A stretch of DNA of 64,000 bases from Lytechinus pictus. Lineage: Eukaryota. The stretch lies in NCBI RefSeq assembly GCF_037042905.1, contig NC_087258.1, forward strand, positions 8,246,001 to 8,310,000, read 5' to 3'. Numbering within the stretch: position 1 is the stretch's first letter; each line of letters starts with the position of its first letter. Of this stretch, positions 906-44,600 are shown piece by piece. The notes below the pieces were generated by a model, which did not search any database, was not told the DNA's origin, and worked only from the letters and a program-made list of their open reading frames with translations. The position numbers and the translations under genes are program-made.

Positions 906-2380
906 ACATCTATGATCTTCGTCTTCGTGATAGGCTGCAGAGCCCTTTGAAGATTACAGCAGATGATGATGATGATGATGATCATTCTACTAAAATTATA
1001 TAATGTTTTCTCTTTTAATTCCATATAAATGAACTGCTATTATCTGAATTCTCTTTAGGCAATAATTACATACTCCTTTGATAGAAGTTCCATGGAAATA
1101 TATTGAAGATGTACGATAAAAGTGTTACGCTCATACACATCGATTGCTTTGTCTAATGTGAATTCATATTTAATCATCCTTATATTCTGAATGACTCCTA
1201 AATGATCATTTTATATCAAGTATCGTTATTAAAGAAAAATATCTGACTACAAATTCTCTTTCTGGAATCATCACCTTCTTTTATTTTAGAATTCAATTTT
1301 ATAGTATACGCAACAAAAATATGATCTGCATTATACCACATTTTAAAAACAAGTTGTTATATTAAACATGTTAAACATAATACTAATAATGACCGTTTAT
1401 GACCATGAGTGCAATGGAAAGAATACTTCATGAGGTGAAAGATGAATGGATCATTCATTTAATCTTTTACCGAATGAAGTATTTTGTTAATTGCACGAAT
1501 GATGAGAACATTCATATGACACCTAAAAAAATATATTTTTTTATGAAATTTATGAAATTCGGTGCAAAATAAGTATGTTTATGCAGTGTGAGCTCGGTCT
1601 GTTGATTGTCGCGTAAATACAACACCCGTGCTGCAAACACGAATGGTTTTACTTGTGGTACCTGCAGTCAGGGTGCACATCTATGATCATTCTACTGAAA
1701 TTATTTAATGTTTTCTCTTTTAATTCCATGTAAATGAACTGCTATTATCTGAATTCTCTTTAGGCAATAATTACATACTCATTTGATAAAGGTTCCACGG
1801 AAATATATTGAAGACGTACGATAAAAATGTTACGCTCATACACATCGATTGCTTTGTCTAATGTGAATTCATATTTTATCATCCTTATATTCTGAATGAC
1901 TCATAAATTATCATTTTATATCAAGTATCGTTATTAAAGAAAAAATTCTGACTACAAGTTCTCTTTCTGGAATCATCACCTTCTTTTATTTTAGAATTCA
2001 ATTTTATAGTATACGCAACAAAAATATGATCTGCATTACACCACATTTTAAAAACAAGTTGTTATATTAAACATGTTAAACATAATACTAATAATGACCG
2101 TTTATGACCATGAGTGCAATGGAAAGAATACTTCATGAGGTGAAAGATGAATGGATCATTCATTTAATCTTTTACCGAATGAAGTATTTTGTTAATTGCA
2201 CGAATGATGAGAACATTCATATGACACCTAAAAAAATATATTTTTTATGAAATTTATGAAATTCGGTGCAAAATAAGTATGTTTATGCAGTGTGAGCTCG
2301 GTCTGTTGATTGCCGCGTAAATACAACACCCGTGCTGCAAACACGAATGGTTTTACTTGTGGTACCTGCAGTCAGGGTGC
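906..2380. repeat. Tandem duplication of a ~700-bp unit (906-1676 / 1677-2380)
   Basis: Two near-identical copies running acatctatgatc...attctact...gtacctgcagtcagggtgc. Copy 1 has an extra 66 bp at 918-983. Confidence 0.9.
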
Positions 2381-3117
2381 GCGCGTGCAGTGGAAAAATC
2401 ATATGGATCCAAAATTGCACGATGAATGGATCAAAAATTGCACGGTTGATAACGTCATTGTAAAATGGGCTGAATGACCGATATCAAACAGCCAATCAAA
2501 TGACAAGGATTTATCTAGTTGTCATATAAAATGAGTTATTGATTGAGGATATTGACGATACATTGAAAAATTATGCTGGATACTAGGTGGACGCAGAGTT
2601 CGTTATTACATAGAAGAGAGTTTTCGCAACTGTGACGCAGAACGATTTGGGCACATAGGGAATGTATTGTCAAATGCCCTTCAAGAAAAAGAGCAAACAA
2701 GAAAAAAAAAGTTTCGTCTGGATTCTGCATGGTCAAACGACATAATTACAATTTTCCGTTAGCTCTGAAACGGAGGACGGAACTGCTGATCCGATTCGCC
2801 AATTTTCGACAAAGACCTCACAACTATTCATTACGATTTGACTAACATTTACAATGCATTTGCTGTGTCCTAGGATTCGTTCTGTGACGCAGTGCGAAAA
2901 CTTTCTACTGACGAAGTCAGATCACACAGTCAAAGCGTGGCTATTAATTGTCATGGGTATGTGATACATGCATCAAACTGTGCCTATTGTGTTTTCCACA
3001 TTATTTTCACTTTGTGTTCATACAATTGACTATATTATGTCGACTACACACTGTGTTGACTATGCGTTCTTCCGGCAAGACTGACTGGGCGAAGAAGTCT
3101 GCGGATATAATAAATAA

Positions 3118-3121
<4 letters not shown>

Positions 3122-3173
<52 letters not shown>
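3122..3173. repeat. (AT)n microsatellite
   Basis: Uninterrupted AT dinucleotide run. Confidence 0.95.
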
Positions 3174-3175
<2 letters not shown>

Positions 3176-3380
3176 TTTATATACCACGTATAATGTCGAT
3201 AAGTAGTCCTAAATACGATTCTGCTTGGTATTTAAATTTCCGTACACTTTTTGGTTTTTGGGTCACTTTTGGCCAAGGAAGAAGTCTCACCGCAGTGCAA
3301 AGTGTCAAACCACATCGGGAGACCGATTATCGAATTCTGCGGACAGTTCAAAGTAGTTATAGTATAGACCTCATACCTAT

Positions 3381-3535
3381 TTGACCTTTGACCCGGTCAG
3401 CCGTTACCTTTGACCACATGACCTTTAGCCCGGTCAGCCGTGACCTTTGACCCGGTCAGCCATGCCCTTTGACCACATGAGCTTTGGCCCGGTCAGCCAT
3501 GACCTTTGACCACATGACCTTTAGTCCGGTCAGCC
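3381..3535. repeat. Subterminal TGACCTTTGACC / CCGGTCAGCC repeat array of the left TIR (mirror copy at 9424-9652)
   Basis: Three perfect TGACCTTTGACC copies (3382, 3441, 3500) plus variants on the left; six perfect GGTCAAAGGTCA copies on the right (9448, 9544, 9581, 9603, 9618, 9640). Confidence 0.85.
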
Positions 3536-4153
3536 AAGCCCTCTATAGCTAGCATGACCCGACGGCCATAACCCATACTTCCGGTCAGCCATGACGTCAC
3601 AATGAAAAGGTGTTAGTTACGCAACCACCGTGATGTCATCCCAGGGAAGCACCCTTATTGCACCATCGGTATTGCACCACCGCGGTGCACCGTTGCGTCA
3701 TCGCCACGTATTATCGGTCGACCTTATCACACGATGCAGCGACGTTACACGCGTATTTTTAGAATATAATACGATGCACAAAAAAGACATCTATACAGTT
3801 ATCTTTCTCCGCCTACCAGCAGATATGTCAAGTGCCTCGCGGTTCACGAAGCGATCAACCCATGCTAGGCCAACGTGAGCATGCATCCGTAGATTCCGTA
3901 AGAATCCGTAAAAATTTGCAAGAATATCCGTAAGAATCCGTAAAAATTTACAAGAATATCCGCAAGACTCCGTAGATTCCGTAAGAATCCGTAAAATTTG
4001 CAAGAATATCCGTAAGACTCCGTAGATTCCGTTGAATCCGTAAAAATATGTGAGTAATCGAAGTACCTTCACGCGCGTTTCATGATTACGTATTATTATA
4101 GAAGATTCAACGTTAATTTTCTTCATTTCCGAACAAATAATCATCGAGTCAAC

Positions 4154-4777
4154 ATGAATACCTTGGATATGTCCAACCGTTACGCTTGTTCACAATGCGA
4201 TAAAACCTATAGTAGGAAGTATGATATGCAGAGGCATGAACAAAATGAGCATTATACTGGAGAAGAAACGAGTGAAGATGAAGACTCCGACCCACCCTCT
4301 CAAATGCAAAGAGTTGAAGAATCCAACGATGATTCCGAAACGAGCGTATCAGAAAGCGATGGACACGAATCGTCAGAGACACATAACATGGATGAAATTG
4401 AAGACAGCCTCGCTTATCGAGGATGGTAAGAACAAGCCATGACAGCCACCAAGGACTTGAGAGACGAAAAATATCAGAAATATGTCTCAGAGGGAATGGA
4501 AGAAGAAGACGCTAAAGAAAAGGCTCACGTGAAACTACTGTGGGCCATCAAACGCATCTTTTTCGATCTTTACTCTCAGTTCTTGCGGCAGAACGTGTAC
4601 CTTGAAGACGCTGACATCAATCATGAAATCGTGTCCGATCTCACGGACAGATTAGAAAATGGCATGGATTTTCGGAAAGCCGTAAAGAGAGTGTTAGCCA
4701 GGCATGGTTCACAATTCGAAGGTTTATTCCAGTATCAAGATGAAGATGACAAAGAAGAGACGAATGACGACGAGTAA
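4154..4777 (+). pseudogene. Polinton cargo gene: C2H2 zinc finger + acidic linker + helical C-terminal domain, interrupted by one in-frame TAA
   Basis: MNTLDMSNRYACSQCDKTYSRKYDMQRHEQNEH carries a CxxC-x12-H-x4-H finger. ORFs 4082-4429 and 4439-4777 are in the same frame, separated only by TAA at 4427-4429 (SLAYRGW*EQAMTATKDLRDEKY...). Intronless; AATAAA at 5314. Confidence 0.7.
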
Positions 4778-5637
4778 GAGACGCGTGATACAGGTGGACA
4801 CCGGCACAACTGAAGATGTCACATCGCCTTGACAACAAAATACTTCCAAGACAGCATTAATAACGGAACCCTAAAATTTTTATCGTGAATATCAATCTAG
4901 TTTCTGAATGGCATAACAAGATGATACTAATGTTCCTAATATTGCGCACATATCCACCTTGTTAGGTGCTCAAGGCGCTCCTATATTACTTTAAGGTATA
5001 TTGCTGCAAAATGACGTTACAGATTTACGAAAAAGGGATCTGATACTTGTTTATGTAGTAGAAATGTTATGTTATTGGTGATTCGTAAAGAAAGATTGGA
5101 TACCTGTTCCTATAGTATGGCAGTATTGTCTTTAATGATGTATCATTATGGTTGTGTCATGAACGTTTATGGGCAGTATGGAATCGCTACATTTCTTTGA
5201 TAGAGAAAACAAAAGATTGTTTATAAACTTGATGTTATAACTTTTCGGTAAATCATTTTAACTCTAGCTAAAAACGTCTATATTTATGGTTACTCGTGCT
5301 TTGTATCAAAGTGAATAAAGTAAAATTAAGAAAGATTTGAGATTTTCGTATGACTCTTGCCTTATTTCTTGTTTATGTGCTCGTATGACAGACGTGGTTG
5401 TGCTCGGTAATAATGGAAATGATGCTGATGATTGAAATAACGGTGATAATGTTGACGATGATGATGTTTCTGATGTGAAAGATAATTCTAATAATACGGA
5501 TGATGCTGGTGATTGAAATAAAGGTGATAGTGTTGACGAGGCTAACGTTTGATATAATTATACTGATAATGATAATGATGCCGGTGTTTGAAATAATGGT
5601 GATAAGGATAATGACGCCGATGTCCAAAATAATAACA

Positions 5638-5998
5638 GAGAGCGAAGTTGGCTCAGTCGGTTAAGCGTCTGCCTGTCGAACCAAAGGCCGTGGGTTCGAG
5701 TCCACCCCAGGCGCATGACTGAAACCTGCGTTGTGTGTAAACGCCTCTCCCCTGATCCATAGATGGGGCTATGTTACAGCGGAAATACACCGTCCCTCGG
5801 ATAGGACGTTAAACGGAGGTCCCGTGTAGAGGAGAGTCACCGCCTTTACACGTTAAGAACCCACTGCACTATTCGCATAAGAGTAGGGGGAAACCCCGGT
5901 GAAGTGGTCCACCTGCACTCCCCAAATCAGTTATATCGGGAAGAGATTCAGTTCGCTTAAAATTCGCCTCCCGTGTACATGTGACGGCAAACAAATAG
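5638..5998 (+). mobile_element. tRNA-derived SINE with Deu/Nin-type central domain, inserted in the Polinton
   Basis: A box TGGCTCAGTCGG, B box GGTTCGAGTCC. Core CCGTCCCTCGGATAGGACGTTAAACGGAGGTCCC...CACGTTAAGAACCCACTGCACTATTCG..AAGAGTAGGGG resembles the Deu domain. Candidate TSD TAATAACA (5630-5637 / 5999-6006). Confidence 0.8.
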
Positions 5999-6584
5999 TA
6001 ATAACATAGTAATAGCTCTATGGTAATAGTAATCACGGTGATAATGTTGACGATGGTGGTGTTTGGAATACTTGAGAAATGTTGATGATACTGATGTGAA
6101 AAATAATTGCGATAATATTGATGATGCTGATGTTCTAAATATCGCATAATGTTCAGAATACGAAGGTTTATAATAATGGCGCTAATACTGACGTTGAGGG
6201 TTGCGTTAAATATGGTAATATACTTTAAGGCTAAAGTCCATTTCATTAGAGTTAGCGAAAAGTCCATTAGAGTTAGGGTAAAATCCAGCTTATCTCGATT
6301 TTCATCCCCATCATGTCCCTCCATCGCGTCCATATCAGATCTCGCGTCCCCTTCTTCATCCTCGAGGTTCGGGCGCTTTCCAAAACGCATGAACCTTCTA
6401 TAATAATACGTAATCATGAAACGCGCGTGAAGGTACTTCGATTACTCACATATTTTTACGGATTCAACGGAATCTACGGAGTCTTACGGATATTCTTGCA
6501 AATTTTTACGGATTCTTACGGATATTCTTGCAAATTTTTACGGATTCTTATGGAATCTACGGATGCTCGCGTTGGCCGTGCATG

Positions 6585-8947
6585 CATGGGCGGAAATCCC
6601 AGGGGGGACAGGGGGGACGTGTCCCCCCCTACTCAAAATAGTAGGGGGGACACAATATCAAATGTCCCCCCTACTATTTTTTGTCTTTTATGATGGTAAG
6701 AAATACATCATTCTAAATCGAAATAAAACATGTATTTTGAGACGAGTTGGGACGAGATGACCGAACTTTTGGGATGATGACCTTTTTTTTTCTTGTCACT
6801 TTTATGGTCTGAATAATTTTATCAACATTTGCTGCTTGCTCGCAAATTTTGATTTATCAGGTACCTATTATTTTCGGGTATTCCATAAAGTTTTCAAAAA
6901 TATCCCTTTTCAGGTCTGATTGTCAAGACGTATCAGCTAGCGCTGCACGCTGGCATTTTGATTGGCGAGTTATGTATGTTTCAATATTGATTATACAACA
7001 AACTACTTAAAATCCCCTTTTCACGACAGTTTATCAAAAATTTTAGCTCGCGATTTGCGCTCGCATTAATGGTTAAAAATATATTAACTGATGCATCCTA
7101 TTAATAATTACAAAGGTGAAATGTCTTGTTTTTATGCCATAATATCATCAGATTTCGCGCCCTCATTAGGCATTAATAAATATGATATTAATTTAATAAT
7201 TAAATTGTCCCTTTTTTTTATCTCGCGCTTAGCAAGAGGAATTTTCATGACATGTTTCTGTTTCTGTTTCTGTTTATGGTAACTCCCGTAGGAACTCGGC
7301 AGGACAGCATTTTTTGCTGGTAAACGCCAAGCTGGTATATAACCAATTACCTTGGAAACATTTTACGTCTAGGTTAATCAGTCATAGTGGCTGACGTAAT
7401 AGACGACAGATATCACTCTTGGGCCTTTGTATCAAAGTGGAGACAATGGCAGAGTTGGGATTCAAACTCACAACCTTGCGATTATGAGTCCAATGCTCTG
7501 CCTCTAACCACTGGACCACACGACCCTTACATGTCGTAAGGATGTCCCGGTCCTATGTCAAAACTCAAAGTAATAATAATGAAAATTTTAGCTCTTTTTT
7601 TAAAGTGCGATCCATATCTACCTTACAATTTTCCTCCAAAATGCTTGAAATATAAAGTTGTAATTGACTCTTTTTTTCAGATCGGAATATCAAAGTTTCA
7701 TGATTAAAGATGTATTTAGAATGCCTAGATTCTAGGTCGAAATATGAAACACGCGCGCGCATGTTTATTCAAATACTCAACTTGTTCTCTATTTAAATCA
7801 TTATCCAGTTTCAGATCACAATATCAAATTTTTTCTGCTCGCGCTTTGTGCTCGCATTATTAATGTAGGAAGCCCGGGGTAGGAAGACCCCCTATTACTC
7901 ATCCTTTTCATGATTTACAAAACATTGATTTTGATTGATTTATTTTATTTAAACACGGTAAAATGCCCTCGATCAGCCTATGGCTGTTTACAAAACATGA
8001 ACAGAGTGGCCCATTTTTAGGTCTAAATCTCGATTTTTTTTTCTGCTCGCGCTTCGCGCTCGCATCAATTGTTGAATTATATAGCTATCCTGTTCACGAT
8101 TACAAAAATTGATAAAAATTTTCCATTCTTTCTTTAGAAATTTTCACAAATTTTCAGCTCGCGCTTCGCACTCGCATTTTTTTATTGTTGAAATATGTAA
8201 TACCTTCATGGCTAAGTGCAAGCAGTCCTTAACATGTACCTTTTCAACAGGTACCAGTTCAAAACGTATATAAAAATTTTCTGCTCGCGCTTTGCGCTCG
8301 CATTATTAATACTCATCCTTTTCATGATTTACAAAACATGAATAGAGTGTCTCGTTCAGTAAATATTATAGGACTAAATCTCGAAATTTCCGCTCGCGCT
8401 TCGCGCTCACATCAATTGTCTACTTATATACCTATTCTGCTTGAGTTACAAAAAGTGCTTAGAATTTCCATTCTTTAGGTGAAAATGTCACCAAAAAAAT
8501 AAGCTCGCGCTTCGCGCTCGCATTATTTGATTGTTAAATGCTAACTGCACGCAGTCTTTAATAGGTATCTTTTCCATCAGTTCATTTCTGCTCGCGCTTT
8601 GCGTTTGTAGTAATTATTAAGTTGCATACACATCTTTTCAGGATAACAAACATTGCCCAGAATGTTCAAATTTTACGAAAAAATACATAACATTTCCAAA
8701 AAATTAGCTCGCGTTTCGCACTCGCATCATATTAATGAGGATTATGATATTATATATGAATTTATAAAAATAAAGCTAAGAAGTGACTAATGAGGACTAC
8801 CCCTTCAAAGAAACAAACACAAATCATCTTCGAGCTGCCGATCGGGGAAAATATGGCTGAAACAAATTTCCGCCCCCCCCCCCTATTGGCGAAGGCTGGA
8901 TCCGCCCCTGTGTCCCCCCTACCTTTGGGGAGAGATTTCCGCCCCTG
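6585..8947. mobile_element. Non-autonomous hAT-like element inserted in the right Polinton TIR
   Basis: TIR CATGGGCGGAAATC / GATTTCCGCCCCTG (13/14 match). 8-bp TSD CGTGCATG (6577-6584, 8948-8955). AT-rich interior with about 10 GCTCGCGCTTCGCGCTCGCA-type motifs. Confidence 0.85.
7256..7526 (-). mobile_element. tRNA-derived SINE inside the hAT-like element
   Basis: Minus-strand head GGGTCGTGTGGTCCAGTGGTTAGA...GAGTTTGAATCCC (A/B boxes) and an (AAACAG)n tail near 7256-7275. Confidence 0.65.
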
Positions 8948-9908
8948 CGTGCATGGGTTGATCTCTTCGTGAACCGCGAGGCACTTGACATATCTGCTGG
9001 TAGGCAGAGAGAGTCGGCTTTCACCTTTCCAATAGGATTGACCCCGGATATCCCAAGTTCAATGACACGCGTTGGCCGTGCATGGGGTGATCGCCTCGTG
9101 AACCGCGAGGCACTTGACATATCTGCTGGTAGGCGGAGAAAGATAACTTTTTAAATAGGAAACTGTACAGATGTCTTTTTTTGTGCATCGTATTATATGC
9201 TAAAAATACGCGTGCAACGTCGCTGCATCGTGTGATAAGGTCGACCGAAAGTCATTAATACGTGGCGATGACGCAACGGTGGTACAATACCGATGGTGCA
9301 ATAAGGGTAATTCTCTGGGATGACATCACGGTGGTTGCGTAACTAACACCATTTCATGGTGACGTCATGGCTGACCGGAAGTCTGGGTTATGGCCGTCGG
9401 GTCATGTTAGCTATAGAGGGCGTGGCTGACCGGACTAAAGGTCATGTGGTCAAAGGTCATGGCTGACTGGGCCAAAGGTCATGTGGTCAAAGGGCATGGC
9501 TGACCGGGCTACAGGTCATGTGGTCAAAGGGCATGGCTGACCGGGTCAAAGGTCACGGCTGACCGGGCTAAAGTTCATGTGGTCAAAGGTCATGGCTGAC
9601 CGGGTCAAAGGTCATGTGGTCAAAGGTCATGGCTGACCGGGTCAAAGGTCAAATAGGTATGAGGTCTATACTATAACTACTGTTCAATGCAGACAGAAGG
9701 TAAATTCAGTTTTAAATATGTTGCAAACACAATTTAAAATGTTTTTTTAGAAACCAACCGTCTATACTGAAGGACAGAGACATTTAACTCCATCTTCTTT
9801 TACCACACACACATGGATTGAGTTCACGATGTATCATGATGGTTTGACAGTAGTCGAAAAAATAATTATGATGATCAAATTCTTGATGATTTGTCTGGAT
9901 TTTCTCTT

Positions 9909-12900
9909 TTATTTACGAACTACAGCCCATCTCCGTCGAGCAATCAAGAATGCAAAGGTGAGGATGACGATTAAGCAGTTAATGGCGCCAAGAGTTAGAA
10001 ATACTGCTGTGTAAGACCCAGTTTTGTCCTTGATCAGACCTGAGGAATGAAATAAGATTGAAAAATAGTGATGCAACATTTACACAACAATAATACACGT
10101 GTTAATTTTCAATGCGCCTGTGGAGGTGTGTGCGGGTGAGTGTTTGTGGGTGTAAGTGTATGGTTAGTGTGGATGTATGTGGGTTAGGGTGTGTGTTTCG
10201 ATGCGGATACACATTCTTACCAGGGTTCTAGGGTTTGTTTCATTTAAAAAAAACAGATGGCCATGGGAATTCGCATCTTGTCATATGGTACATTAATCAC
10301 TCAAAATTCAGGTTACCAATAAAATGTTTTGTTTTTGTTCTCATTGAATTTGCATTTGTAATATACGTGGGGCCAGGCTCGACTAGCACTTGTGTTATTT
10401 TCTGGTCCCATTTACCATTGTATGTTTCTTACATTTATGTGTAACTATTAAGCAATTTGTTTCATAACCTGTGAACATGTGAATATTGTTGGTAAATTAA
10501 TCAATCAAATCAATGTATTTTACCATAGTAGTTACTTTAATGACCAAATTGCAGGATAAAGATCATTGTACTGCTATATTATACTCAAGCCCAAAGTTGT
10601 TTAATGTTATGAACAAACTATGGTTCTTACCCGAAAGTAGACTTCCAACACTTCCTCCGACGCCGTACATAAAACCAAAAATCCCTGATGCAACGGTGAA
10701 ATTTTCATTGGACACAGACCCCTTGATAAAAGCAGCCGAAGATATTCCAAAGCTGAAGATACACATCCCCTGGATAAATGCTGTGGCACACATAGTGGGA
10801 AAGGATGTTATCAACGGATCGAATAAGAAGGTAGTTGATGACACAATGCCCACAATCAGGAAAAAAAATATGAAGTCAAATTGGAAGAAGAGAACTGTAA
10901 CACATAAAATCCGTCCTAGAATGCCACCTCCACCAGCAATAGACGACAACAATACAGCTCTTGATATCGGAATCCCGTGCCATACCGCTCTTGGAACAAG
11001 GAATAGAATCCATGACTGTACTACGACTGATGCGAAAAAGAGACAGGGCAGTGAAATAAGTAAAAGTGGTTCCCGGATGATAATGGAATCCCGAAGCCAC
11101 CGATATAATCGAACTGTCCAGCCCCGATCTTCGCGATTTTTCGAGGTTGCTCTTGATGATGAAACGTCATCTGACCTATATCGCTCTTCATCCATTGTAG
11201 TCATCATCAAGTCTTCTCCATCACCGTCATCATCTGGATCAATTAACGGTTCTTCCCAACTGTTTCCTTGTTTCTGTGTCTTTGTGGATTTCTGATAACC
11301 TCGCTTACCTGTTCTGGCAGACCTAAGAGCACAACTGGCTGCAATAGCATGCATGCTGATACCTCCAAGGATGAGCATGGAGCCACTAAATCCATAGGCG
11401 TCTAGCGCCCGCTCGATGATGACCGGAACCAGTAATGCACCGGCAGTGCTTCCGAGGTTGCCTATGGCGTTCATAAGTACGAACCTTCCCTGAAAGTAAT
11501 CGTTGAGTAAGACCTTGGTTGGTAGATATCCCATCGACAGTCCAAATCCTAGAGAAGAGAAGAGAAAGAGGAAAGTGGAAAATGTAAGAGAATTGGCAAT
11601 TTTGAACCACAGTTATTTTCTGATCGCATATTAAAGAGAAATTCCAGTAGTTGCAGTAAACACTGATTTCATGAGAAAGTCTGTAAAACCAGGCTTAATT
11701 GTCAGTATATCATCGAGGATCTAGATCTGGTACAGTTACATAAACTGAACTTTGTGAAATATTGATATCTACGCTGAAAAATGTTCAGACTGAACTTCCC
11801 CAACACAGATAAGCGCACGTGGGACTGTGTATAATTATTGCTTTGAGCGTCGGGCCCGACGCTCTACCCGAATCCTGTGCTTATTTGCTGATTTCTCAGC
11901 AATTACACAATTTCTTCCAGAATCCTTTGGCACATGCGTTTTATTTATGCAAACAGACACTTTGGTGGTCATTTCATTGGATTCTGTACGAACTCATTTT
12001 GGTATCGTTACCAAAACTAGCATTTACATTTAAGCAAACATTTTTTACTGTTGTAAGTTCAAAAAACATGTCATGGATACATTAAACTTAGTCGTCATGG
12101 CTAACTTTAATCATCTTGGCAATAAGACAACTATATCCAAAATGTGAATGTCATCAAGGTGATGTAAATCATCTAAGCAAATGAATGTTAAAAAAACAAG
12201 TTTTTAATATACGATAAGATATATTATATTCCCCAGTGAATCGGATCAACCCGAAACTGTAAATGGGGGCGACGCGTCGTGGTCTTGTGGTTAGGAATCT
12301 CGTCTTTCAGTGAGAGGGACGTGGGTTTGAATCTCAGCCACAGCGTGTTTTCCTTCAGCAAGAAATCTATCCACATTGTGTTGCACTCAACCCAGTATAG
12401 GTGAATGGGTACCCGGCAGGATTAATTCCTTGAATGCACCAAGCGCCTTTAGCAGCTGGAGCTACAGCCGGCATGGCCGGGATAATATAATACAGTAGTG
12501 TGCCAATGAAGAGAAAACTAGATGCATAGGCGCCTCATAAATGCTAGGCCTATATATTATTGTCGACAGGGTGATATAAAACATCTCACCAAGTTTATGA
12601 CAAGCCTTCAACAACTACTAGTAGAGTAGGCCTAAATTGCTTTCTACTTTCATTTTTATAAAACCTTTTTGGTCAAATATGACAAATCAACTGGAGACAA
12701 CAACACCACCACAAGTTGGTTGCCACGGAGGAATTTGTCTTTCCAAGCAGACTTCCCAAAAATGGTAAATCGATATTGCAAGATACATGCTTATCAAATA
12801 TCAAGTCGATCCAGCAAAAAATGTCTTACTGGTCCTAGTTTCTTGCCAAGCCGACTTCTCCGAAACTTTAAGTCGACATGGCGACACAGATCTTCTAAAA

Positions 12901-19008: not shown

Positions 19009-19831
19009 TAGCCTGTCTTCTTTCGTTTCCCCTTTATGACGTATCCTTTTCGTCATCCTTTGTGCGCTTTTGCTCACTGTTTTGGATACGCGCATCTTTA
19101 TTACCGTGTTTACACTTAATCGGCTTTTGAATCGGCTAGCGGTTCTGAACCGCGAGCCGATGCAGCATCGGCTTTTTCATAGCGTGTAAACGCGAGTAAC
19201 TTGCATCGGTTCGCGGTTCAGAACCGGCAATTTGCACCACCAAAGTAGTAGGTTTAGAACCGCGAGCCGATGCAGAATCGGCTTTTTTACTACGTGTAAA
19301 CAGAAAGCCGATTCTGCATCGGCAATTTGTGCGCATTTCATTTACTTTACCATTGTGACGTAATTGTAAGCGCACTGATCCAGCGTTGTCTTTATTATGA
19401 CGTATATTGTTGGTGTGCGTATCATTTCAGGTTTTTGCATCGGCTCGCGGTTCTGAATAGTTCAGATTCTGAACAATTTTATTTAAGAGCAAAAAACTTT
19501 TTTCCTCGCCCGTACAATTCGGGATCACGCCATCTCTCGGCCTGGCAGCGGTTGGGGGATTGCTCTTAAAGGACAAGTCCACCCCAACAAAAAGCTGATT
19601 TGAATAGAAAGAGAAAAATCAAACAAGCATAACACTGAAAATTTCATCAAAATCGGATGTAAAATAAGAAAGTTATGACATTTTAAAGTTTCGCTTCATT
19701 TCACAAAACAGTTAAATGCACACCCTGTTCGGTATGCAAATGAGGGAACCGATGACATCACCCACTCACTATTTCTTTTGTATTTTATTATATGAAATAT
19801 GAAATATTTTGATTTTCTCGTCACTGTCATG

Positions 19832-21650
19832 CACTGGCGTAAATCCGTGTTGAGGGGTGGGGGGGATGACTGAAATATTTTGGCTTTTTTTTTTTTATCA
19901 TGTTTTTAGATATGCAAGGAATTGTAATTGATATGTCCACAGTGGCATACCGTGGGTCACGGCATTGTGGGGGCACCAGCAAAATTTTCGAATCACTGAG
20001 TGAGCGCGCGAAGCGCGCTCGGTTGCTAGTTATTCTGACCTAATAGAGACATTTTAAGGACAATATCATTGAACGGATATGTATCTCACCCGGGGGGGCC
20101 ACTTCCATTGACGAGTGGATACCATGCGCGACCATGGGGTCTCGAAAAGCACCCTAAACACGTATTTTCCATATTCTGAAACTGATCAAATAATGCGAGC
20201 GCGAAGCGCGAGCTGAATTTTTTATATTCACACCTAAGAAGGGACATTATAATCAAATTTGTGTAATCATGATAGGTACCTGTCTCGCTAAACAATGCGA
20301 GCGCGAAGCGCGAGCTGAAATTTTCGTATATTTTGACCCCAAACAGCGAGATTTTAAGGAATATATTTTAGGAATCCATTAAGAGTATGCATATCTCACC
20401 ATAGTCATCTAATGCAAGTGCCAAGCGCTTGCTGATTTTATTAGAATTACATCTGAACACATGAAACACTTTTTGTACTCATTGCAATCATGATTATCAT
20501 ACGCATCTCACTAATCAAATATTGCGAGCGTGAAGCGCGAGCTGAAAATTTAGATAATTTAGATAATTAAGACCTGAAGTGGGGCATTCTAAGGTTTCTT
20601 TGTAGGAATTAACTAGGACCATACGTATTTCATTAACCAAATGATGCGAGCGCGAAGCGCGAGCTGAAAATTTTTGATATTCAGATCAGAAGAAGGGACA
20701 TTTCAAGGACTGATTTTAGAAATTCATGAAGAGCAGACTTATCTCACCAATCCACTAATGCGAACGTAATCACGGACAGGAAATGTTTCATATATAAGAA
20801 GACCTTAACATGGGGCAATCAATTTTTGAGTCATGAAAAAGAAGCATATGTCACTACATAAAACAATGATAACTCAAGTGCTAGGAAATATATTTTGTTT
20901 ATATTGACTTGAAAACGGGATGTTTCAGTACAACAGGATTATATATCTCGTTAGCAGACAATGCGAGCACCAGGAACTATGAAGACGTAGGCCCTGGGCA
21001 AATTATGTTTCATGAAGTTATGATAAAAATATTTCTTATGTAATGTAACATAACATAATTATAATACAACATTATAATGAATAATATTTTCTTCTTTCCC
21101 ACTACGTTTCTCTTCCTTTCTCCCTCTTTTCTATTTTTCCCCATTTCCCCGTTTTTGTTTTGGTCAGCCGATGGGGGGGGGGAGCATGTGCCCCCCATGC
21201 CCCCCCCCCCCCGTAGTTACGCCACTGTATGTCCATATGGCAAATACCCCTCCAATATTATTATCTTTTTACCCCATGATGGTTTAATTATTTATTAGAG
21301 ATTACATTGAAAAAAAAATTGACATTCCATCTTAATCCCCTCCCAAAGACCCCAACATTGATGAATTGGAAGAAACAGGGATTTCTCTTCAATGTTATAA
21401 TAAGGACATAAGTATTTCGTTTGGAAATGGTGAACTGGCTCTTTATTTGCATTTTATGATTCAATAATATTGTTTTATTTGTTAAGCGGTATTTTAGGAA
21501 GAATTTTCACCAATAAAACAATTATCTCTTGTGATTTTTTTTTTATTTCTTTCGTAAAAAGTGGGGGGGATGTTTGTACAGGCCATCCCCCCCTCCTCGA
21601 AAAGTGGGGGGGATATATCCCCCCCATCCCCCCCGGGATTTACGCCAGTG
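19832..21650. mobile_element. hAT-like MITE (nest level 4)
   Basis: 15-bp perfect TIR CACTGGCGTAAATCC; 8-bp TSD CTGTCATG (19824-19831, 21651-21658). Confidence 0.85.
19940..21227. mobile_element. hAT-like element (nest level 5); same family as 29582-30581 in the opposite orientation
   Basis: CAGTGGCATA...TACGCCACTG; 8-bp TSD TATGTCCA (19932-19939, 21228-21235); GCGAGCGCGAAGCGCGAGC motifs. Confidence 0.85.
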
Positions 21651-23217: not shown

Positions 23218-23378
23218 NNNNNNNNNNNNNNNNNNNNNNNNNNNNNNNNNNNNNNNNNNNNNNNNNNNNNNNNNNNNNNNNNNNNNNNNNNNNNNNNNNN
23301 NNNNNNNNNNNNNNNNNNNNNNNNNNNNNNNNNNNNNNNNNNNNNNNNNNNNNNNNNNNNNNNNNNNNNNNNNNNNNN
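23218..23378. other. Assembly gap (161 N)
   Basis: Run of N. Confidence 1.
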
Positions 23379-27400: not shown

Positions 27401-30400
27401 CTAGGCAAAGTTTGATACCATGACATTCTTGTCGAGGCAGTCAGGCCCACTGGTCAGACCAAAGAGATATCACCTCTTTCCTTGGTCAGACAGACATAGA
27501 CCACACAATGAAACGTCTTATAACCGTCTCGGGAACGAGACATTCCTCAAAGCACTGACACCATGAAATGTTTCTTTTTTTAATTTTCCATTTTCAACAC
27601 GGTAAATAATCATCATCTAGAAGACGTTGAATTTGTTTGCTCTAATACAGTTTTGTGGTTCATTTAATCATCATCCGACCTACACAGGCTGGCCTGACTC
27701 TCATGTCGCCGCCCGGTATGAATATTGAAACCCTAAGTGATGTAGCCCGAGCAGGGGAGTTAATGGCGACGGCTGAACCTCAGTGGGAAATTGATGGAGT
27801 GAAACACGGTTACCATGCCCTTACTTTCGGTCCTCTAACCAACGAGCTTCTCCGTCGAGTCGATCCTCAACATCGCACAATGGGGCAGTTCTTTGCGGAA
27901 GAGATTGCAAAACCTTTAGGTAAATCCTACCCTTACATTACGCTATGTTACCATTGCAACCAGTATTCATTAAGCCATCCATACTGTATGAAAATCCGAA
28001 TGTTTTCAATTATTGGTAGATCTATTACATGTTCGTTCATCATGCTCATCATCCATATTTAGTTGACATAAACATTTACCTGAATAATTTTTTTTCCATC
28101 GTGTTAAAAGTTATGTTCTTTTTGTATTGATTGTATTTATAATTGTATCTTTGTTTCTATAATACGCTATACTAAATTTCTACGTAGGATACATTTTCAA
28201 TTCACACCTAGCCAGGCAACTATGTATTGTGTTTTTACAAGAATACTTTTTGCGTAAATATATTACGTAATTTTATACATGTCCAAGATCTAGATCTAAG
28301 ACAGTGTGTCATTCTGATTTTGTTATCCTGTCAATACTTATTTTGATAAATGAAAATAAATGAAATAAATAAGTAAGTAATTCTTTTCCCACATCACACC
28401 ATCATTGTGATCATTAGAGTGGGCCCCGATGTGCGTGCTTCTCAGCCAATCAAAAAAAGCTTTCAAAGTCAGATCCGACAACTTGTAAGTCGATGAAACG
28501 CCCACTCTTTATGACGTGTTCGCCATGACAGGTGGATTGGACTTTCACATCGGACTACCGTTGGATCAGAAGTACAGAGTTGCTCGATTGATTGAAGGAA
28601 AGATTGGGAGACTATGGGGTCTAGACGATCCTACTATACGACAGATGACATTGCATTTCTTGCGGACATCATATTTCAGCAACATGAAACAAAATCAAGA
28701 AAGTATCCTTTCCACAGTAAGTAATTTTCTTTTACTGCCCACACAAAAGAACCCACAAGCTCTGATATTATTTTTCAAGCATACATTTGTACAACACCAA
28801 ATCAATCACTGACTAAATTTAAAGGGATATTTTTGCTTTCAAGATGTCCCACGATGATGTTCTGCATGCATCTGTCCCTTCCACCGACGCCTTCCAATGC
28901 TTATGAAGTCAATTTGAATTTGTCACTTGAATACAAATTATCAATGGAAATCTTAATGCTGATCGATTATTTGATATTGTGTATCCAGTTGTATTCACAT
29001 TGTTTCATTCATTTGTGAGTTGTAAGATTAAGTTGGGCTGAATTTCACGTATGGCTTTCTTTTATTTATTTGGTTTTAGCAAAAACTGCATTATAAAGGT
29101 AAAACAAATACTTAACATAGCACATAAAGTAACGCACACACTGAGCTTGTGATTCTAGAACTTTCAACAATAATAAACATGATAAAGTTCGAGAAAAAAA
29201 ATTTGTAAATGACTAAGAGAATCAAATATGATAAAGATCCGGATATAATATAACACTCCTATAACTACTGCTTTTGTTTTCTTTCTAATAGCTGGCATCT
29301 TTCAACAATCCCTATTTCCAAGCTGTTGAACTTCCCTCGGCGAATGGTATTGGGACGGCTCGGGCTGTCGCGAAGGTAAATCAGGGGTGGAGGGGTAGTC
29401 GAGGGCCGATCGCCACATCCCCTATGATTTTCATGTAGTGAAATAAAGGAAAAAAAGACGAAAAGACGAAAGAATTAAGATTATAAACCTATGATATATT
29501 ATCATTTAGTAATCTTAGTATTTGACGAATTAATTTAGTCTCCCTGTTGGTGTACTCATAGCTATAGGCTACATGTATGACCAGTGGCATAACTACTGGG
29601 GGCGCCCCCCCCCCCCATCGGCTGGTCAAGAAAAACAAACTGGAAAAAGGAGAAAAGGGAAGAGAAACGTAGTGGGAAATAAAAAAATTATTGTGCATTA
29701 TATTATTATATTGTGACATATATATATATATTGTATGTTATATTACATTAATATTTTTTCATAACTTTATGAAACATAATTTGCTCAGGGCCTATGTGTT
29801 CAACGTTCCTAGTGCTCGCGTTGTCTTTTTAACGAGATATATAATCCTTTTGTACTAAACATCCCGTATACACCAAATACACCAAATATATTTCCTCACA
29901 CTTCGAGTTATTGTTTTATGTAGTGACATATGCTTCTTTTTCATGACTACTTACAGTGATCGCCTCCTTTTAAGGTGGATTGGTTAGATATGTCTCCTCT
30001 ACATGAATTCCTAAATTCAGTCCTTAAAATATCCCTTTTTCTGATCTGAATATCAAAAATTTTCAGTTTGCGCTTCGCTCTCGCATCATTTGGTTAGTGA
30101 AATACGTATGGTTTTCATGAATTTCTACAAACAAGCCTTAGAATGCCTCTCTTTAGGTCTTAATATTTAAAAAACTCAGATCGCGCTTCGCGCTCGCAAT
30201 ATTTGATTAGTGAGATGTGTACATTAATCATGATTACAAGGACTACAAAAAGTACTTCATGTGTTTAGATGTAATGCTAACAAAATCAGCAAGCCTTGGC
30301 ACTCGCAATAGATGACTATGGTGAGATATGTATACTAAAATGTCCGTTTGGGGTCAACATATACAAAATTTTCAGCTCGCGCTTCGCGCTCGCATTGTTT

Positions 30401-38600: not shown

Positions 38601-41600
38601 GAAATTCCATCCACAAGGGATATTTGCGTGAAAGGCATAACGAAGGGAAGGTCTCATTAATCTAAAAAGGTTTTACTATTGCGGAAAATGTTTAATCGAA
38701 TCTGGCACGGTGTCAACTTACCTAGAATTTCATTGTCACTCACGTTAGTTATCAGATCGCTATTGAATGTTGACGAAAAATCCCCTGCAAGTCATCAAAA
38801 TAAAGCATTAACAAGTGATTAACGTTATACTCATGTTACAATATTTAACCAAAAGTGCATATTAAGGATGTTTTAAAAGCAATGAACGCATTAATTAAAT
38901 TGTAGTAATGGACCGAAAATTCCATATAATCAAAATATATAAATTTATTTTAGTGTAAGCTATGCAAGCCTTACGTTCTTGCCTGTGAATATTTGGGTCT
39001 AATAATGTTAAGTTTTAATTACATTTTTCTAACACACGCAACAACCTTTGGCATAATTACAAAGCAGTAAATTGTTATTTTAGATTTATTCATTCCTTAC
39101 TTTCTTTAGACGGAGTAGTCTCTTCAGTACACAAAAACTGTTTTTTCGAGAGAGCCCCGATTACCATAAAAGCATAAGCAAAAAGCTTCCTTATATCTAA
39201 TATCTAAAGTTGGTTGCAATACTTACAGAGTACATTAAGTGTAATTTGATTTTAAGTCACCTTCTTTGAAATCATTCCCCCTTTGGCTTTCTGTCCACTC
39301 ATCATTTCCCAGTTCATAATCCAAACTATTGCCCTCATTGGCTGTGATGATATATCCTACTCCATCGACTTCAAAATATTTGATACCATCGGGCTGGAAG
39401 AAGCTAAAGATGTCGTTTTGTTGAAAAACGATCCCTGAAAGTATGATTAAAATTAAGAGTGTGAGATGTAGCTGATTTAAATAAAAAGATCTATATTGGC
39501 AAGCTGGTAAATTTTATCAACTGGTTCCTCGTAATGAAAGCTGTTGATGAAAACTTTATCCATGTCACCGACTTATTCTTGTCTACCAAATATAGAAAAT
39601 ATAGGTAATTTAGAAATACAATTATAATCATAATTTCTTTTTTAAATTTTTGTCTCTTCGACGATGATTTCGGAGAAGCTTCCCAAATTGACCTAATAAT
39701 AAAAACCATGCGAGTCAACCGAGTAATAAAAATCACACTTCATTATAATGCGCCGTTAGGTCCAACTTACACTTTTCTATTGATACAGTGGGGAAAAATA
39801 AATGAATGAATACTGTTCCCAGTGATCACATGGAACACTTAAATAATAACAATTCTACACATGTCATTTACCATATACCTTGTGAGTAACAAATATTGAC
39901 ACCTCACAAATCCCCAATTTAAGAAAATACATACGTTTCGAACGCATAATCATTGTGTATGACTGGAAAGGGTATCTTCTTCCAAATAATTTGATACCAT
40001 ATTTATGTGGTACGTGTTAACACTTGGATCAGTGGCGTACCTGGCATATTTCGTCAAGGGGGGGCAAGCGACAAGAATGAGAAAGGTGGGGGGAGGGGGG
40101 TAGTAGGCATGGACGTGTATAGGCACAATTTTTTTCGAGGGGGGCTGATAATAATTGCCCAAATATCAACTTTACAGTTTTTAATTTTCGAGCGAGCGAA
40201 GCGAGCGAACGTTTTTTTCAATTATTATTTAGCCTTTTTACATGATGTGAGACGTGCAGAAATTATACATTCGGTCATAAAATTACCAATACACAAGGAT
40301 ATTTGGGCATTTCGCAATCCTCCTTTCCCTGCATTTTGCAGCCCACCCCCCCCCCCCATACACGTTTGGATGTGTAGGTCTGGCAGTGGCACTGAAGGTG
40401 GGAAAGGTTACCCAGGGAGTGCCCAATAAAACAGTTGGGATCTTGCTTCTACTGATATTTGCTATCGGGCGATTGCACTTTATTGTCGAAATTAATTCCG
40501 TTTTTTTTTTTATATCATTCCAGAAATGAAATGTATTTGATCGCGATCGATATATTTCTAATCAAGTGGTAATTGCAATGTTTATATTAACATACTTATT
40601 TTATTCCTCTTTGAAGGTGTTTACATTATGTTCCCAATTCTGCTGATTTGGAGAGGTTATAAAAAAGGTATTTGACATTGAAATCAGTTAAAAATAATAT
40701 GAAAATAATAATTGCGAGCGCGAGCTGATTTTTTTCTAAAAATTTAGACTTAAAACGATACATTTTGTGCACTTAATTATTAATACGATGGGTATCTTCC
40801 TTAATGAATTATGCGAGCGCGAAGCGCGAGCTAAAAAAATTGATATTCCTAACTGGACACTAGACATTCTAAGCAGTTTTATAGAATTGGTTTCTTAACA
40901 GTCGTGCGGTCGCGAAGCGCGAGCTAAAAACTTTTGATATTCCGACTTAGAAACTTGATATTCTAAGCACTTTTAGTAACCATGAACAAATTGGTTTCTA
41001 ACTGAATAATTAATTGATGCGAGCGCGAAGAGCGAGCTGAATATTTGAGATATTCCCCCCTGAAAAGTGAACATTCTAAGCACCTTTTAAAAAAAAAACT
41101 ATGAACAAGATGGTAGTTAAAAACAATTAATTGGTGTGAGCGCGAAGCGCGAATTGAAAATTTTTGATATTTCGACCTGAAAACCTTACATTCTGAGCAC
41201 TAGCGTACCTACGGGGGGGGCAGGGGGGGCACTCTGCCCCCCTGACGAGTCACAACCCATGCAAAAACGTATCTTTGCCCCCCCTGAAGGGCTTGAAAAA
41301 CCTTTTTTGCCCCCCCTCTGACGAGCTTGAAGACCTTTATTTATTTTTTTTATTTTTTTTTTTTTGCTTGTCAATTTTTTTCTAGTACGAAATCCTCTAT
41401 TTGTTATCGAAGACCTTTTTTTTTTTTTTTTGCTTGGCAAATTTTTTTCTGGTACGAAATCCGTTATTTGAGATCGAAGACCTTTTTTTTTTTTTTTTTT
41501 TTTTTCTTTTTTTCTTTTCAAATTTTTTGGCGGACGGTTTTGCCCCCCCTGTGGAAAATCCTAGGTACGCCACTGATTCTGAGCACTTCATTTAATTCTG

Positions 41601-44600
41601 AACAGGATGGAATTTTATGCGTTTGCGAAGCACGAGGTAAAATTGTTGATATTCCGACCTAAGAACTTGATATTCTAAGCAAATTTTGTAACCGTGAACA
41701 AATTGGTTTCTACTGATGTATTTTTGATTTTTTATATTCCGACCTGAAAACTGGACATTCTAACCACTTCATTTAACTATGAACAGGATGGATATACCTA
41801 AACAGTTATACGTGAGCACGAAGCGCGAGCTGAAATTTTTGATATTCCGGCCTAAGAACTGGATATTATAAGCACTTTTTGTAACCGTGAACAAATTGGT
41901 TTGTAACTAATAAATTGATGCGAGCGCGAAGTGTGAGCTGAAAATTTTTGATATTTCAATCTGAAAACTAGACATTTATTTTAGGTATCCAACTAAAAAA
42001 TTGATGCGAGCGCTTAGCGCGAGCGAAATTTTTATTGTTTTAATTACATTACCTAAAAGTTTTCTGTACCTTTTTCCTGTCCCTGGTCAGCCCAGTCCAT
42101 ATTCACTATCGGTACAGAGAGCTCCAAAAGTCGCATTGCGTAAAAATCACAATTTACCGATAAAAGTGTAAGGTTTAATTGACATTTACAGACAATGATG
42201 GTGGAACTAAAAAACCGAATCAGTTGGAACAGCCAAGTGTGCCCGAAATATTTCCAACAGTCTGCAGTCCAGTTTTTGTTTCCCTTTTCTCTTAAACTCT
42301 TTCTTCTTTTTCCCCTTCCCCTTTTTTCTTTCTTTCCTTTTTCCTCTTTTTCTTTCTCTTTTTTCGCTTCCTTTTTTTTTGCTCGTGACTCGTCAGGGGG
42401 GCAGTCTGCCCCCCCTTAGGTACGCTAGTGACTTGGATGATCAGGAGGTATTATTTACAGTGATGTATATTTCGATTTGCGCCAAAGTAATGCATGAATG
42501 CAATGAATGAACCCCAGATGCAAATGGTATCATAATCCTACATGAGTTAGTAAACGTATTTGAAAATCCTTTTTTTTTTATTGATGAGTTGAATTCAGAA
42601 ATAGAGAGTATGAGCAAAATAGTTTACCACCATCTTTGTCGCTTGCATCCAGGTAGAGGCTACTCCAGCTTTTTTCACCAAGTGGATAGATGTCTTCTAT
42701 CTCATCGGTTGTTAAATCTATGACAGCGATTGCGTTGTTTTTCTGAAATAACAAAAAAAACGTAGTGCTGTAAAAAGCCTATAATGTACTGATACTCAAA
42801 CAGTTTATTCAAGTAAATCAAGATCACTTCACCTCCCAAATATTTTGGTTTCTAACGCCGTTATGTATATTTCTGTACGACGATGCCTCGGATTGAATGT
42901 TGTACATAAATATTTATTCATTCTATGAAAGGTTTATATAACATATGCGTATGATGATATCTTGCTTGGAAACAATTATCATTTTCAACCACTTTGAACT
43001 ATTACAAATAAAGGGCCACCAGCTTGCAGCCGAGTCTCTACAATTTATTGATTGTGACACTGCCCCCCCGGTGGCGGGAGATAAAATGTAGAAAATTGTC
43101 GGGCAGAGGGTTGGTGCGTAATTTCCGGGAAAACGGGAAAAAAATAGATTACTTAAATTATTATTATTATAAACTGTCATAAAAGTATTTTTTAAGTTTT
43201 ACAGAGAGAAATTGGTAATGAACAAAAATTAAAAAAAATAAAAAAAAGTTGAAGGTGCATGCTGTGGTTGGAGAATAAATGTCAGCTTCCTTTCTAGTAA
43301 CAAGTGATGTGAAGCAAGGATGTACAATCGGTCCTATCTTTTTTTTTTACTTTTTTCTAGCAGCAGCATCTACAACAGTCATCAAAATCTTCACAACAAT
43401 AAGGCCTCATTCTCACCATGCAATTCAGCGACGGTCCTATGTAATTAACTGCAATGTGCTCTCCTAACAAGCTTTTCGTTGCATTTGAATGTACAATAAT
43501 TGTTACTTGCCGAATATTTGATGAGAATTATTGAAAGTTAGCTTCCATTACGTGACCTTGAAAGCGCCCACAATTTTTTTGTATAAGTCCTCAAGATTGT
43601 CTCAAACTAATTTCCATATAGCATACACGTACCTGTAATGCAACATATGCTTTAGTGTCATTTTTGTTATATGTAATGTATTCAGGCTCCATATTTTGTG
43701 AGAATGTATGTTCGCCATCGTCTAATTGTCCACGGTAAGAATAACGCACGCCTTTTCCCACGTATTCATCAGCTCTAAAAAAATATAAAATAAATAAATA
43801 AATAAAAATCAGAACAAAGGTTGTACGTTTGAAAATAAAAAGTTCCCAAGGAGCTCTCGCTGCCCAGACATGCTTAAAAATTAAATTTGGAAATTAAGAC
43901 TTCATGAAATAAAATGTGAAAATTCTCTGCACAAAGTTGTCATTCATATTCTTATTTCGGAGTTTTAGGAGTTATATCATATTGGCACAATTCATTTAAG
44001 ACACACAGATGTGTACTAAGATAATCTTGACAATTCTGCAAAGGTGTATTGATAATGATAATATCTCCATTCATATAGCGCTGTTACTATGTGCATATAC
44101 TCAACTGCGCTTTGATACGTGGTATCATAATTATCATTGCCCTGACCGTAGCTGAGCCGCCATATCGGCGCTAAAGCGTCAAGGAATTAATCCTACCGGG
44201 TACCCATTCACTTCACCTGGGTCGAGTGCAGCACAAAATGGGTAAATCCCTTGCTGTAGGAAAACACACCATGGCTTGGATTCGAACCCACGTCCCTCTG
44301 CTAGAAAGACGAGAGTCGTAACCACTAGACCATGACGCCCTTACCATCATCATTATCATTATTATTGAATAACGTCAATATTATTCACCTGTCATTGAAT
44401 TGAGTGAAGTTGAGCAGTGTAGAATTGTAGGTGGAGCCATCATGGGAAAGTCGAATAATGGATATCGTTCCCTCTGGATTGATCAATGCCGTCTTCTCAG
44501 CATTTTCTTTCGCTATTCCCTTATTAGCAACGAGGATGGTTAGGCAATCGTGTGAGAAATGAAGCATATCAGGTTTGCTGCCGACTTTAACCAAAGACGA

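Follow-up and report, generated by a model that had tools for sequence, protein, structure and literature searches.

The stretch of DNA analyzed here (hereafter, the window; 64,000 nucleotides of the Lytechinus pictus contig NC_087258.1, positions 8,246,001 to 8,310,000) contains a small element bounded by long inverted repeats, which is, very probably, an old, inactive copy of a non-autonomous mini-element that derives from Polintons (Mavericks) and belongs to a Lytechinus-like sea urchin. Polintons are regarded as transposons and viruses at the same time, but hardly anything is known about how they live in animals. The window element has ends of the Polinton type, lacks the core genes, is related to several independently inserted small elements, and retains a single gene of Polinton origin, the predicted product of which is homologous to the C-terminal extension of a packaging ATPase. 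Taken together, these features identify it, at the level of sequence, as a non-autonomous Polinton derivative.

The original prediction for this region, made from the DNA sequence alone, described AGTAGT...ACTACT termini, an exact GTTCAA target-site duplication, terminal inverted repeats of ~760 bp, and ~3.6 kb of the element's own sequence left after removal of two later insertions, a hAT-like element and a short interspersed element (SINE). All these points were borne out: the termini and both copies of the duplication were read directly, the left arm measures 758 bp and the right arm was recovered in two pieces, and subtraction of both nested insertions leaves 3,590 bp. The probability of an exact 6-bp match at fixed positions arising by chance is 1/4096. 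Intact vertebrate Mavericks have (AGT)2//(ACT)2 or (AG)3//(CT)3 ends, 6-bp duplications, arms of 46-1,447 bp, and a total size of 12.7-24.6 kb (Barreat & Katzourakis, PMC8097293). The window element resembles such autonomous elements in the end motif (AG...CT), the 6-bp duplication, and the long arms, which extend over several hundred base pairs and include subterminal repeats, but differs from them in size (3.6 kb) and in having none of the approximately eight core genes. In a piecewise comparison, the arms are 95.9% identical across 484 aligned bases in the outer part and 98.2% identical across 164 aligned bases in the inner part, and indels add to the differences, one of them a local duplication of 129 bp in the right arm. 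Both arms hold two arrays of short repeats, one subterminal and one inner. A scan for TGACCTTTGACC with at most one mismatch yielded 14 matches in the window, all located within the two arms, compared to 0.24 expected. No second copy of the arms or the interior was detected by blastn within the 64-kb window. The ends had been described as intact, which holds for the termini but not for the element as a whole, given that its gene is interrupted by a stop codon, its arms are no longer identical, and it has been invaded by two other elements.

The relatives of the window gene point to a Lytechinus-like sea urchin as the host. Three further small elements carry a homologue of this gene, two of them in L. 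pictus. One of these (L005; L. pictus CM073244.1) has AGTAGTTATGGG.../...ACTACT ends and the 6-bp duplication AAAGCA, and its gene is 89-94% identical to that of the window, an intact copy included. This element shares the AGTAGTTA end with the window element and has a related inner arm, in which the TCCGTAAGA-type unit of the inner array is expanded to ~30 copies, and the two elements have no flanking sequence in common. Another one (L001; CM073242.1) is bounded by AGAGAA.../...TTCTCT ends and the duplication GTAGTA, has arms of ~620 bp with 54-bp repeats, and encompasses an intact gene for a 225-amino acid protein (78% nucleotide identity) along with a nested long interspersed element (LINE). 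The remaining one (L007), from another assembly, is 5.5 kb long, with AGTAGTTAATG.../...ACTACT ends, arms of ~1.1 kb, and GGTCAAAGGTCA beside both ends. In the organism that carries L007, one identical 183-amino acid product is encoded on seven contigs with differing neighbors, none of which contains an integrase, polymerase or ATPase domain within 10 kb, and two more diverged subfamilies are present in the same sample. Because the flanks are not shared and the 6-bp duplications differ, these are independent insertions of small elements. Thus, the view that this is a mobilized family rather than a deletion in situ, already put forward in the original prediction, is upheld by sister elements that reside at other sites with other duplications. 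The further copies anticipated there were found with regard to the gene and to different 6-bp duplications (AAAGCA, GTAGTA), but not with regard to the interior beyond the gene, which is not matched. The idea of a working satellite at this particular locus had to be abandoned: with a stop codon, two insertions and diverged arms, this copy is decayed, a fossil of the family.

A comparison of the intact genes of L005 and L001 gave a ratio of nonsynonymous to synonymous substitution rates (dN/dS) of 0.17, at a synonymous divergence (dS) of 0.64, and the gene was thus kept under purifying selection between the intact copies. On the short branch leading to the window copy, dN/dS is 0.58, a value that fits a recent relaxation of constraint.

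Some additional features of the sister elements were observed. The L005 element (6643-12779) contains an internal palindrome, the arms of which reach 1,161 bp and are 100% identical, as well as a truncated end that abuts the middle of a gene copy, and the NCBI gene model P0016 spans the duplication; this arrangement may be a recent foldback-type rearrangement, a nested insertion or an assembly artefact. In L001, a second open reading frame is located downstream of the zinc-finger gene (11393-11836 and 19295-19819), with ~62 residues at 89% identity between two neighboring L. pictus copies and no counterpart in the window. The TGACCTTTGACC motif (complement, GGTCAAAGGTCA) is found beside the ends of each of the three AGTAGTTA-type elements, at 3382-3542 and 9417-9651 in the window, 6667-6757 and 11985-12739 in L005, and 2586-2593 and 8041 (in opposite orientation) in L007, and is not found in L001, which is of the AGAGAA type.

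The only conserved gene in the window element starts 45 bp inward of the left arm. Its predicted product consists of a C2H2 zinc finger with the pattern C-x2-C-x12-H-x4-H, a long acidic linker, and a C-terminal domain. As a single sequence, the finger scores 24.0 bits against Pfam, below the cut-off of 25.2, and the family profile matches C2H2 fingers, and nothing else, in PDB (1e-18); on the strength of this comparison, we consider the predicted zinc-finger gene to be real. The nucleotide alignment of the window gene with an intact relative includes five short indels, four of which are not multiples of three; these may be true frameshifts or alignment noise in low-complexity sequence. Pfam gave no further match for the two pieces of the window gene or for the open reading frame at the right edge of the interior, the C-terminal domain belongs to no Pfam family, and whole members of the family had no match in PHROGs. 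AlphaFold2, applied to a 27-sequence family alignment, predicted the C-terminal domain to be a four-helix unit (mean predicted local distance difference test score, pLDDT, of 86), and a fold search with this model against PDB and BFVD returned nothing below E = 0.1.

When mollusc Polinton proteins were used as tblastn queries, neither the window nor L001, L005 or L007 yielded any trace of an integrase, ATPase or polymerase. For the protein-primed polymerase, the window element contains neither an open reading frame nor a tblastn match to the polymerase fragment of a metagenomic contig (L004). For the capsid and the protease, no reference sequences were compared, and the sole other open reading frame of at least 150 amino acids in the element runs through the SINE. 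The earlier statement that Polinton core genes are missing thus agrees with the empty searches with the polymerase, integrase and ATPase queries, and of the morphogenetic module, only the C-terminal extension of the ATPase has a homologue in the window element. The protein-primed polymerase and the integrase are treated as the defining Polinton genes in PMC5499653; because neither was found, the window element is not an autonomous Polinton and counts as a derivative rather than as a Polinton proper.

The affinity of the retained gene became apparent from an exhaustive HMMER search (E below 1e-3), which yielded 137 family clusters. Most of these consist of proteins of 200-240 amino acids that keep the finger-linker-helix layout, but several longer members (P0091, P0125, P0127 and P0064) are encoded by continuous open reading frames in which an A32/IVa2-like packaging ATPase is followed by the module. 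The ATPase assignment is illustrated by the match of P0125 to Pox_A32 (27.7 bits vs. the cut-off of 22.8) and by the match of the Argopecten locus L003 to Adeno_IVa2 (23.6 bits vs. the cut-off of 21). The Argopecten protein P0110 is the same fusion, cut off just past the Walker B motif, and is 37% identical to P0125 (3e-78). The intact urchin protein is colinear with the finger-plus-helix part of P0064 (1e-15), the finger in the ATPase fusions being a C2HC variant. Furthermore, the module gene lies directly upstream of a gene for an integrase with rve and chromodomain in Argopecten (L003), Mya (L002), Mytilus (L006) and the metagenomic contig L004, the last of which also encodes a protein-primed polymerase (PF03175), and on another contig, the genes for a 1,289-amino acid protein, a 551-amino acid protein and the integrase are consecutive. 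The fusion to the ATPase, the linkage to the integrase and the nearby polymerase indicate that the gene is the Polinton's own rather than host cargo, and the fusion and linkage to Polinton genes rule out capture of a host gene. The window gene is Polinton-derived and is a homologue of the C-terminal module of the packaging ATPase. The original description of this gene as regulator-like cargo accordingly needs to be split: the zinc finger is real, but the gene is not arbitrary cargo, and regulation is only one possibility for its role.

The Argopecten irradians locus L003 itself includes a 2.4-kb inverted duplication (2351-4796 and 9984-12437) that is almost 100% identical between the copies and contains the gene with the ATPase tail along with the integrase gene. 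Its ends (ACATGGGTCGG...) show no obvious target duplication, and it looks like a rearranged Polinton rather than normal arms.

With regard to the mechanism, the family would spread by means of the integrase of a full-size Polinton that recognizes the common AGTAGTTA-type ends, the protein-primed polymerase of this helper probably being used as well. The retained protein would serve the propagation of the mini-element itself. We favor a role in which this protein would link DNA, perhaps the repeat arrays of the arms, to the packaging ATPase of the helper, given that module and packaging ATPase form a single protein in molluscs. Subsequently, the window copy decayed through the acquisition of one stop codon, the hAT-like and SINE-like insertions, and 2-4% divergence between the arms.

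Several observations weigh against the interpretation of the window element as a Polinton-derived mini-element with this mode of propagation. The arms of L001 have no alignable sequence in common with those of the window element, and L007 has no clean target-site duplication. The search for a full-size element with matching ends came up empty, a shared arm 20-mer having 0 matches in viral, metagenomic and prokaryotic collections, the only ones covered. A sea-urchin Polinton, Polinton-1_SP, is mentioned in PMC3014272. When a sea-urchin Polinton was sought with the Argopecten integrase as the query, only bivalve-type integrases were present among the best 120 matches. The stand-alone module was not seen inside an autonomous echinoderm Polinton, and the autonomous elements of molluscs have the ATPase fusion. 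As for the protein, the predicted four-helix domain has no structural relative, so that its suggested function would follow from the ATPase-fusion argument alone, and a single C2H2 finger is weak evidence of sequence-specific DNA binding.

How the small element came to be could, in principle, be explained differently. A full-length Polinton might have inserted at this site and subsequently lost its interior, in which case the mini-element as such would never have been mobile. Such a history would sit well with the plain decay of the window copy, with the presence of the interior beyond the gene in this copy only, and with the degradation of 96% of the vertebrate Maverick loci (PMC8097293). It does not account, however, for at least three other ~4-6-kb elements that have the same arms-plus-gene layout at other sites in two assemblies, two of them with other 6-bp duplications, or for the identical gene product encoded on 7 contigs without hallmark genes. 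Moreover, repeated independent deletions would not each spare one gene and hold it under purifying selection, and we consider this scenario improbable. Even less credible is the attribution of the ends to a different, perhaps undescribed, superfamily of inverted-repeat transposons that also generates 6-bp duplications and captured the zinc-finger gene from a Polinton. The lack of Polinton enzymes in all the small elements, the failure to identify a helper, and the great differences between the arm sequences of the subfamilies (L001 vs. the window) are what such an origin would lead one to expect, but the combination of (AGT)2//(ACT)2 and AG-rich ends, a 6-bp duplication, and long arms with subterminal repeats is the signature of Mavericks, and the sole gene is of Polinton origin. 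Among the transposons considered, Ginger1 and Ginger2, which have 4-5-bp duplications, TGT... ends and a Gypsy-like integrase (PMC2836005), are ruled out because the window element has AGT termini and a duplication of 6 bp; it also lacks an integrase.

The job of the protein is a separate issue from the origin of the element. Instead of being a packaging adaptor, it might be a transcription factor that acts on promoters in the arms or on helper genes. The C2H2 finger is accompanied by a long acidic linker, a possible activation region, the gene sits behind an array of short repeats that are candidate binding sites, and the subterminal repeats carry TGACCTTTGACC, which may resemble a nuclear-receptor DR1 site. 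These features make a regulatory function the chief alternative, but the covalent joining of the mollusc module to the packaging ATPase points to the handling of DNA in virions, not to transcription, and we regard the regulatory option as less likely. Returning to the adaptor role, the most far-reaching proposal is that echinoderms harbor long-lived satellite Polintons that shed the enzymes and capsids but retain, under selection, a stand-alone version of the module that is attached to the packaging ATPase in mollusc Polintons, and that would use it, together with the arm repeats, to redirect helper packaging or replication. This proposal is speculative and rather unlikely; if true, such a lineage would be an animal-virus counterpart of phage satellites equipped with a packaging-specificity subunit of their own.

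Phage satellites with their own packaging-specificity factor include, for example, the phage-inducible chromosomal islands (PICIs) that encode a homologue of the small terminase. The proposed likeness is that of a capsid-less parasite that keeps one protein redirecting the packaging motor of its helper; there is no relation in sequence or fold, and the role of the urchin protein is suggested by the mollusc ATPase fusion only. The nearest conceptual parallel is provided by the transpovirons, which are described in PMC5499653 as linear elements of ~7 kb, bounded by inverted repeats, that arose from polinton-like viruses by reduction and rely on giant viruses. Like the window family, these are Polinton-class genomes cut down to the ends and a few genes, including one for a small zinc-binding protein. 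The transpovirons require the machinery of another virus, a dependence that is suggested for the window family as well; the helicase fused to an inactivated polymerase and the carriage in mimivirus particles are peculiar to transpovirons, whereas the homologue of the ATPase tail and the integration into an animal genome with a 6-bp duplication are peculiar to the window element. The adenovirus IVa2 and poxvirus A32 ATPases represent the Pfam families matched by the mollusc fusion proteins; in contrast, the window protein has no ATPase domain and corresponds to the C-terminal extension, which lies outside the coverage of the viral reference families.

Non-autonomous Polintons are already recognized as a kind, as shown by the names of Repbase families, such as Polinton-1N1_DR of zebrafish (PMC9341505) and Polinton-N1A_NV of Nematostella (PMC11296320). 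According to PMC11296320, Polinton-N1A_NV keeps a capsid gene, the Repbase families being compared here by name and through the citing papers only. The window family differs from these in that one small gene has been selected across diverged subfamilies and species, with only the arms conserved otherwise. In the literature searched, which was incomplete and did not cover Repbase, no description of the ATPase-tail module or of mini-Polintons that keep it was found.

The family points to the cis-acting parts of Polintons, namely, the AGTAGTTA-type ends and the subterminal repeat arrays, and to one protein module that might be worth retaining even for a parasite's parasite. The link to the ATPase provides a candidate role for an unannotated domain that is represented by 137 clusters in marine invertebrates, and it suggests that Polintons, like phages and giant viruses, are accompanied by satellites. 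More generally, the mini-elements may be long-lived parasites of full-size Polintons. In annotated genomes, gene models labeled as an “uncharacterized C2H2 protein” in sea urchins and bivalves would be explained as genes of mobile elements.

The nested insertions proposed originally, a hAT-like element of 2.37 kb and a SINE of 0.37 kb, were both recovered (2,363 bp and 362 bp), each with its own duplication (Table 1). The copies of the duplication CGTGCATG that bound the hAT-like insert are located at 6577-6584 and 8948-8955. This insert has CA...TG inverted ends of the CAKGGGCGGAAATC type and is filled with ~110-bp GC-rich repeats with a GCTCGCGCTTCGCGCTCGC core; the table of open reading frames lists no transposase within 6585-8947, and the assignment to hAT derives from the length of the duplication alone. 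An independent copy of the insert, with 88-98% identity, is present at 2371-4668 of L005. Related ~110-bp repeat blocks with the GCTCGCGCTTCGCGCTCGC core are scattered in the window, near 20185-20711, 30026-30399 and 40905-41956. The SINE-like insert contains a tRNA-type A box at 5649 and a B box at 5693; it was not recognized by ARAGORN or Rfam, the identification being based on the two boxes and the duplication, and no second copy was found within the window. For the interior outside the gene, neither blastn nor tblastx revealed a counterpart in L001, L005 or L007. The short minus-strand open reading frame at 6151-6417 starts within the innermost part of the right arm, a placement that is the mirror image of that of the zinc-finger gene at the left arm. 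No relatives of this open reading frame were found in the fetched loci, and it could be what is left of a lost gene or a chance occurrence.

Table 1. Features of the mini-element and its insertion site (coordinates within the window)
Feature	Position	Strand	Details and basis
Whole mini-element	3352..9681		6,330 bp including two nested insertions; termini AGTAGT / ACTACT
Left target-site duplication, GTTCAA	3346..3351		Read directly; identical to 9682-9687
Right target-site duplication, GTTCAA	9682..9687		Read directly
Left terminal inverted repeat	3352..4109	+	758 bp; inverted-repeat pairs, blastn, arm comparison
Left subterminal tandem repeats	3382..3542	+	Periods of 22, 37 and 59 bp, each with TGACCTTTGACC; Tandem Repeats Finder
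Inner-arm array	3885..4049	+	~10-bp TCCGTAAGA-type units with 32/50-bp higher order; just upstream of the gene
Sole conserved gene	4154..4777	+	C2H2 zinc finger, acidic linker, predicted four-helix C-terminal domain; one in-frame stop
Non-coding interior	4778..5636		Degenerate AT-rich 35-81-bp repeats; seen in the window copy only
Nested tRNA-derived SINE-like insertion	5637..5998	+	362 bp; 7-bp duplication TAATAAC on both sides
Rest of the interior	5999..6389		Holds part of the short minus-strand open reading frame 6151-6417
Right inverted repeat, inner piece	6390..6584	-	Mirrors ~3883-4109; inverted-repeat pairs
Nested non-autonomous hAT-like element	6585..8947		2,363 bp; splits the right arm; 8-bp duplication CGTGCATG
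Right inverted repeat, outer piece	8948..9681	-	Has the 129-bp local duplication and the subterminal array 9417-9651

Outside the element, a long minus-strand open reading frame at 10563-11534 matches the Major Facilitator Superfamily (PF07690, 46 bits); it lies ~0.9 kb from the element and probably represents one exon of a gene for a host transporter. Farther away, an open reading frame at 58997-59830 encodes an RVT_1 domain (87 bits) and represents an unrelated retroelement fragment, and a run of 161 Ns at 23218-23378 is an assembly gap or a masked region. Finally, an (AT)n-rich palindromic microsatellite occupies positions 3105-3183, ~170 bp upstream of the insertion site.

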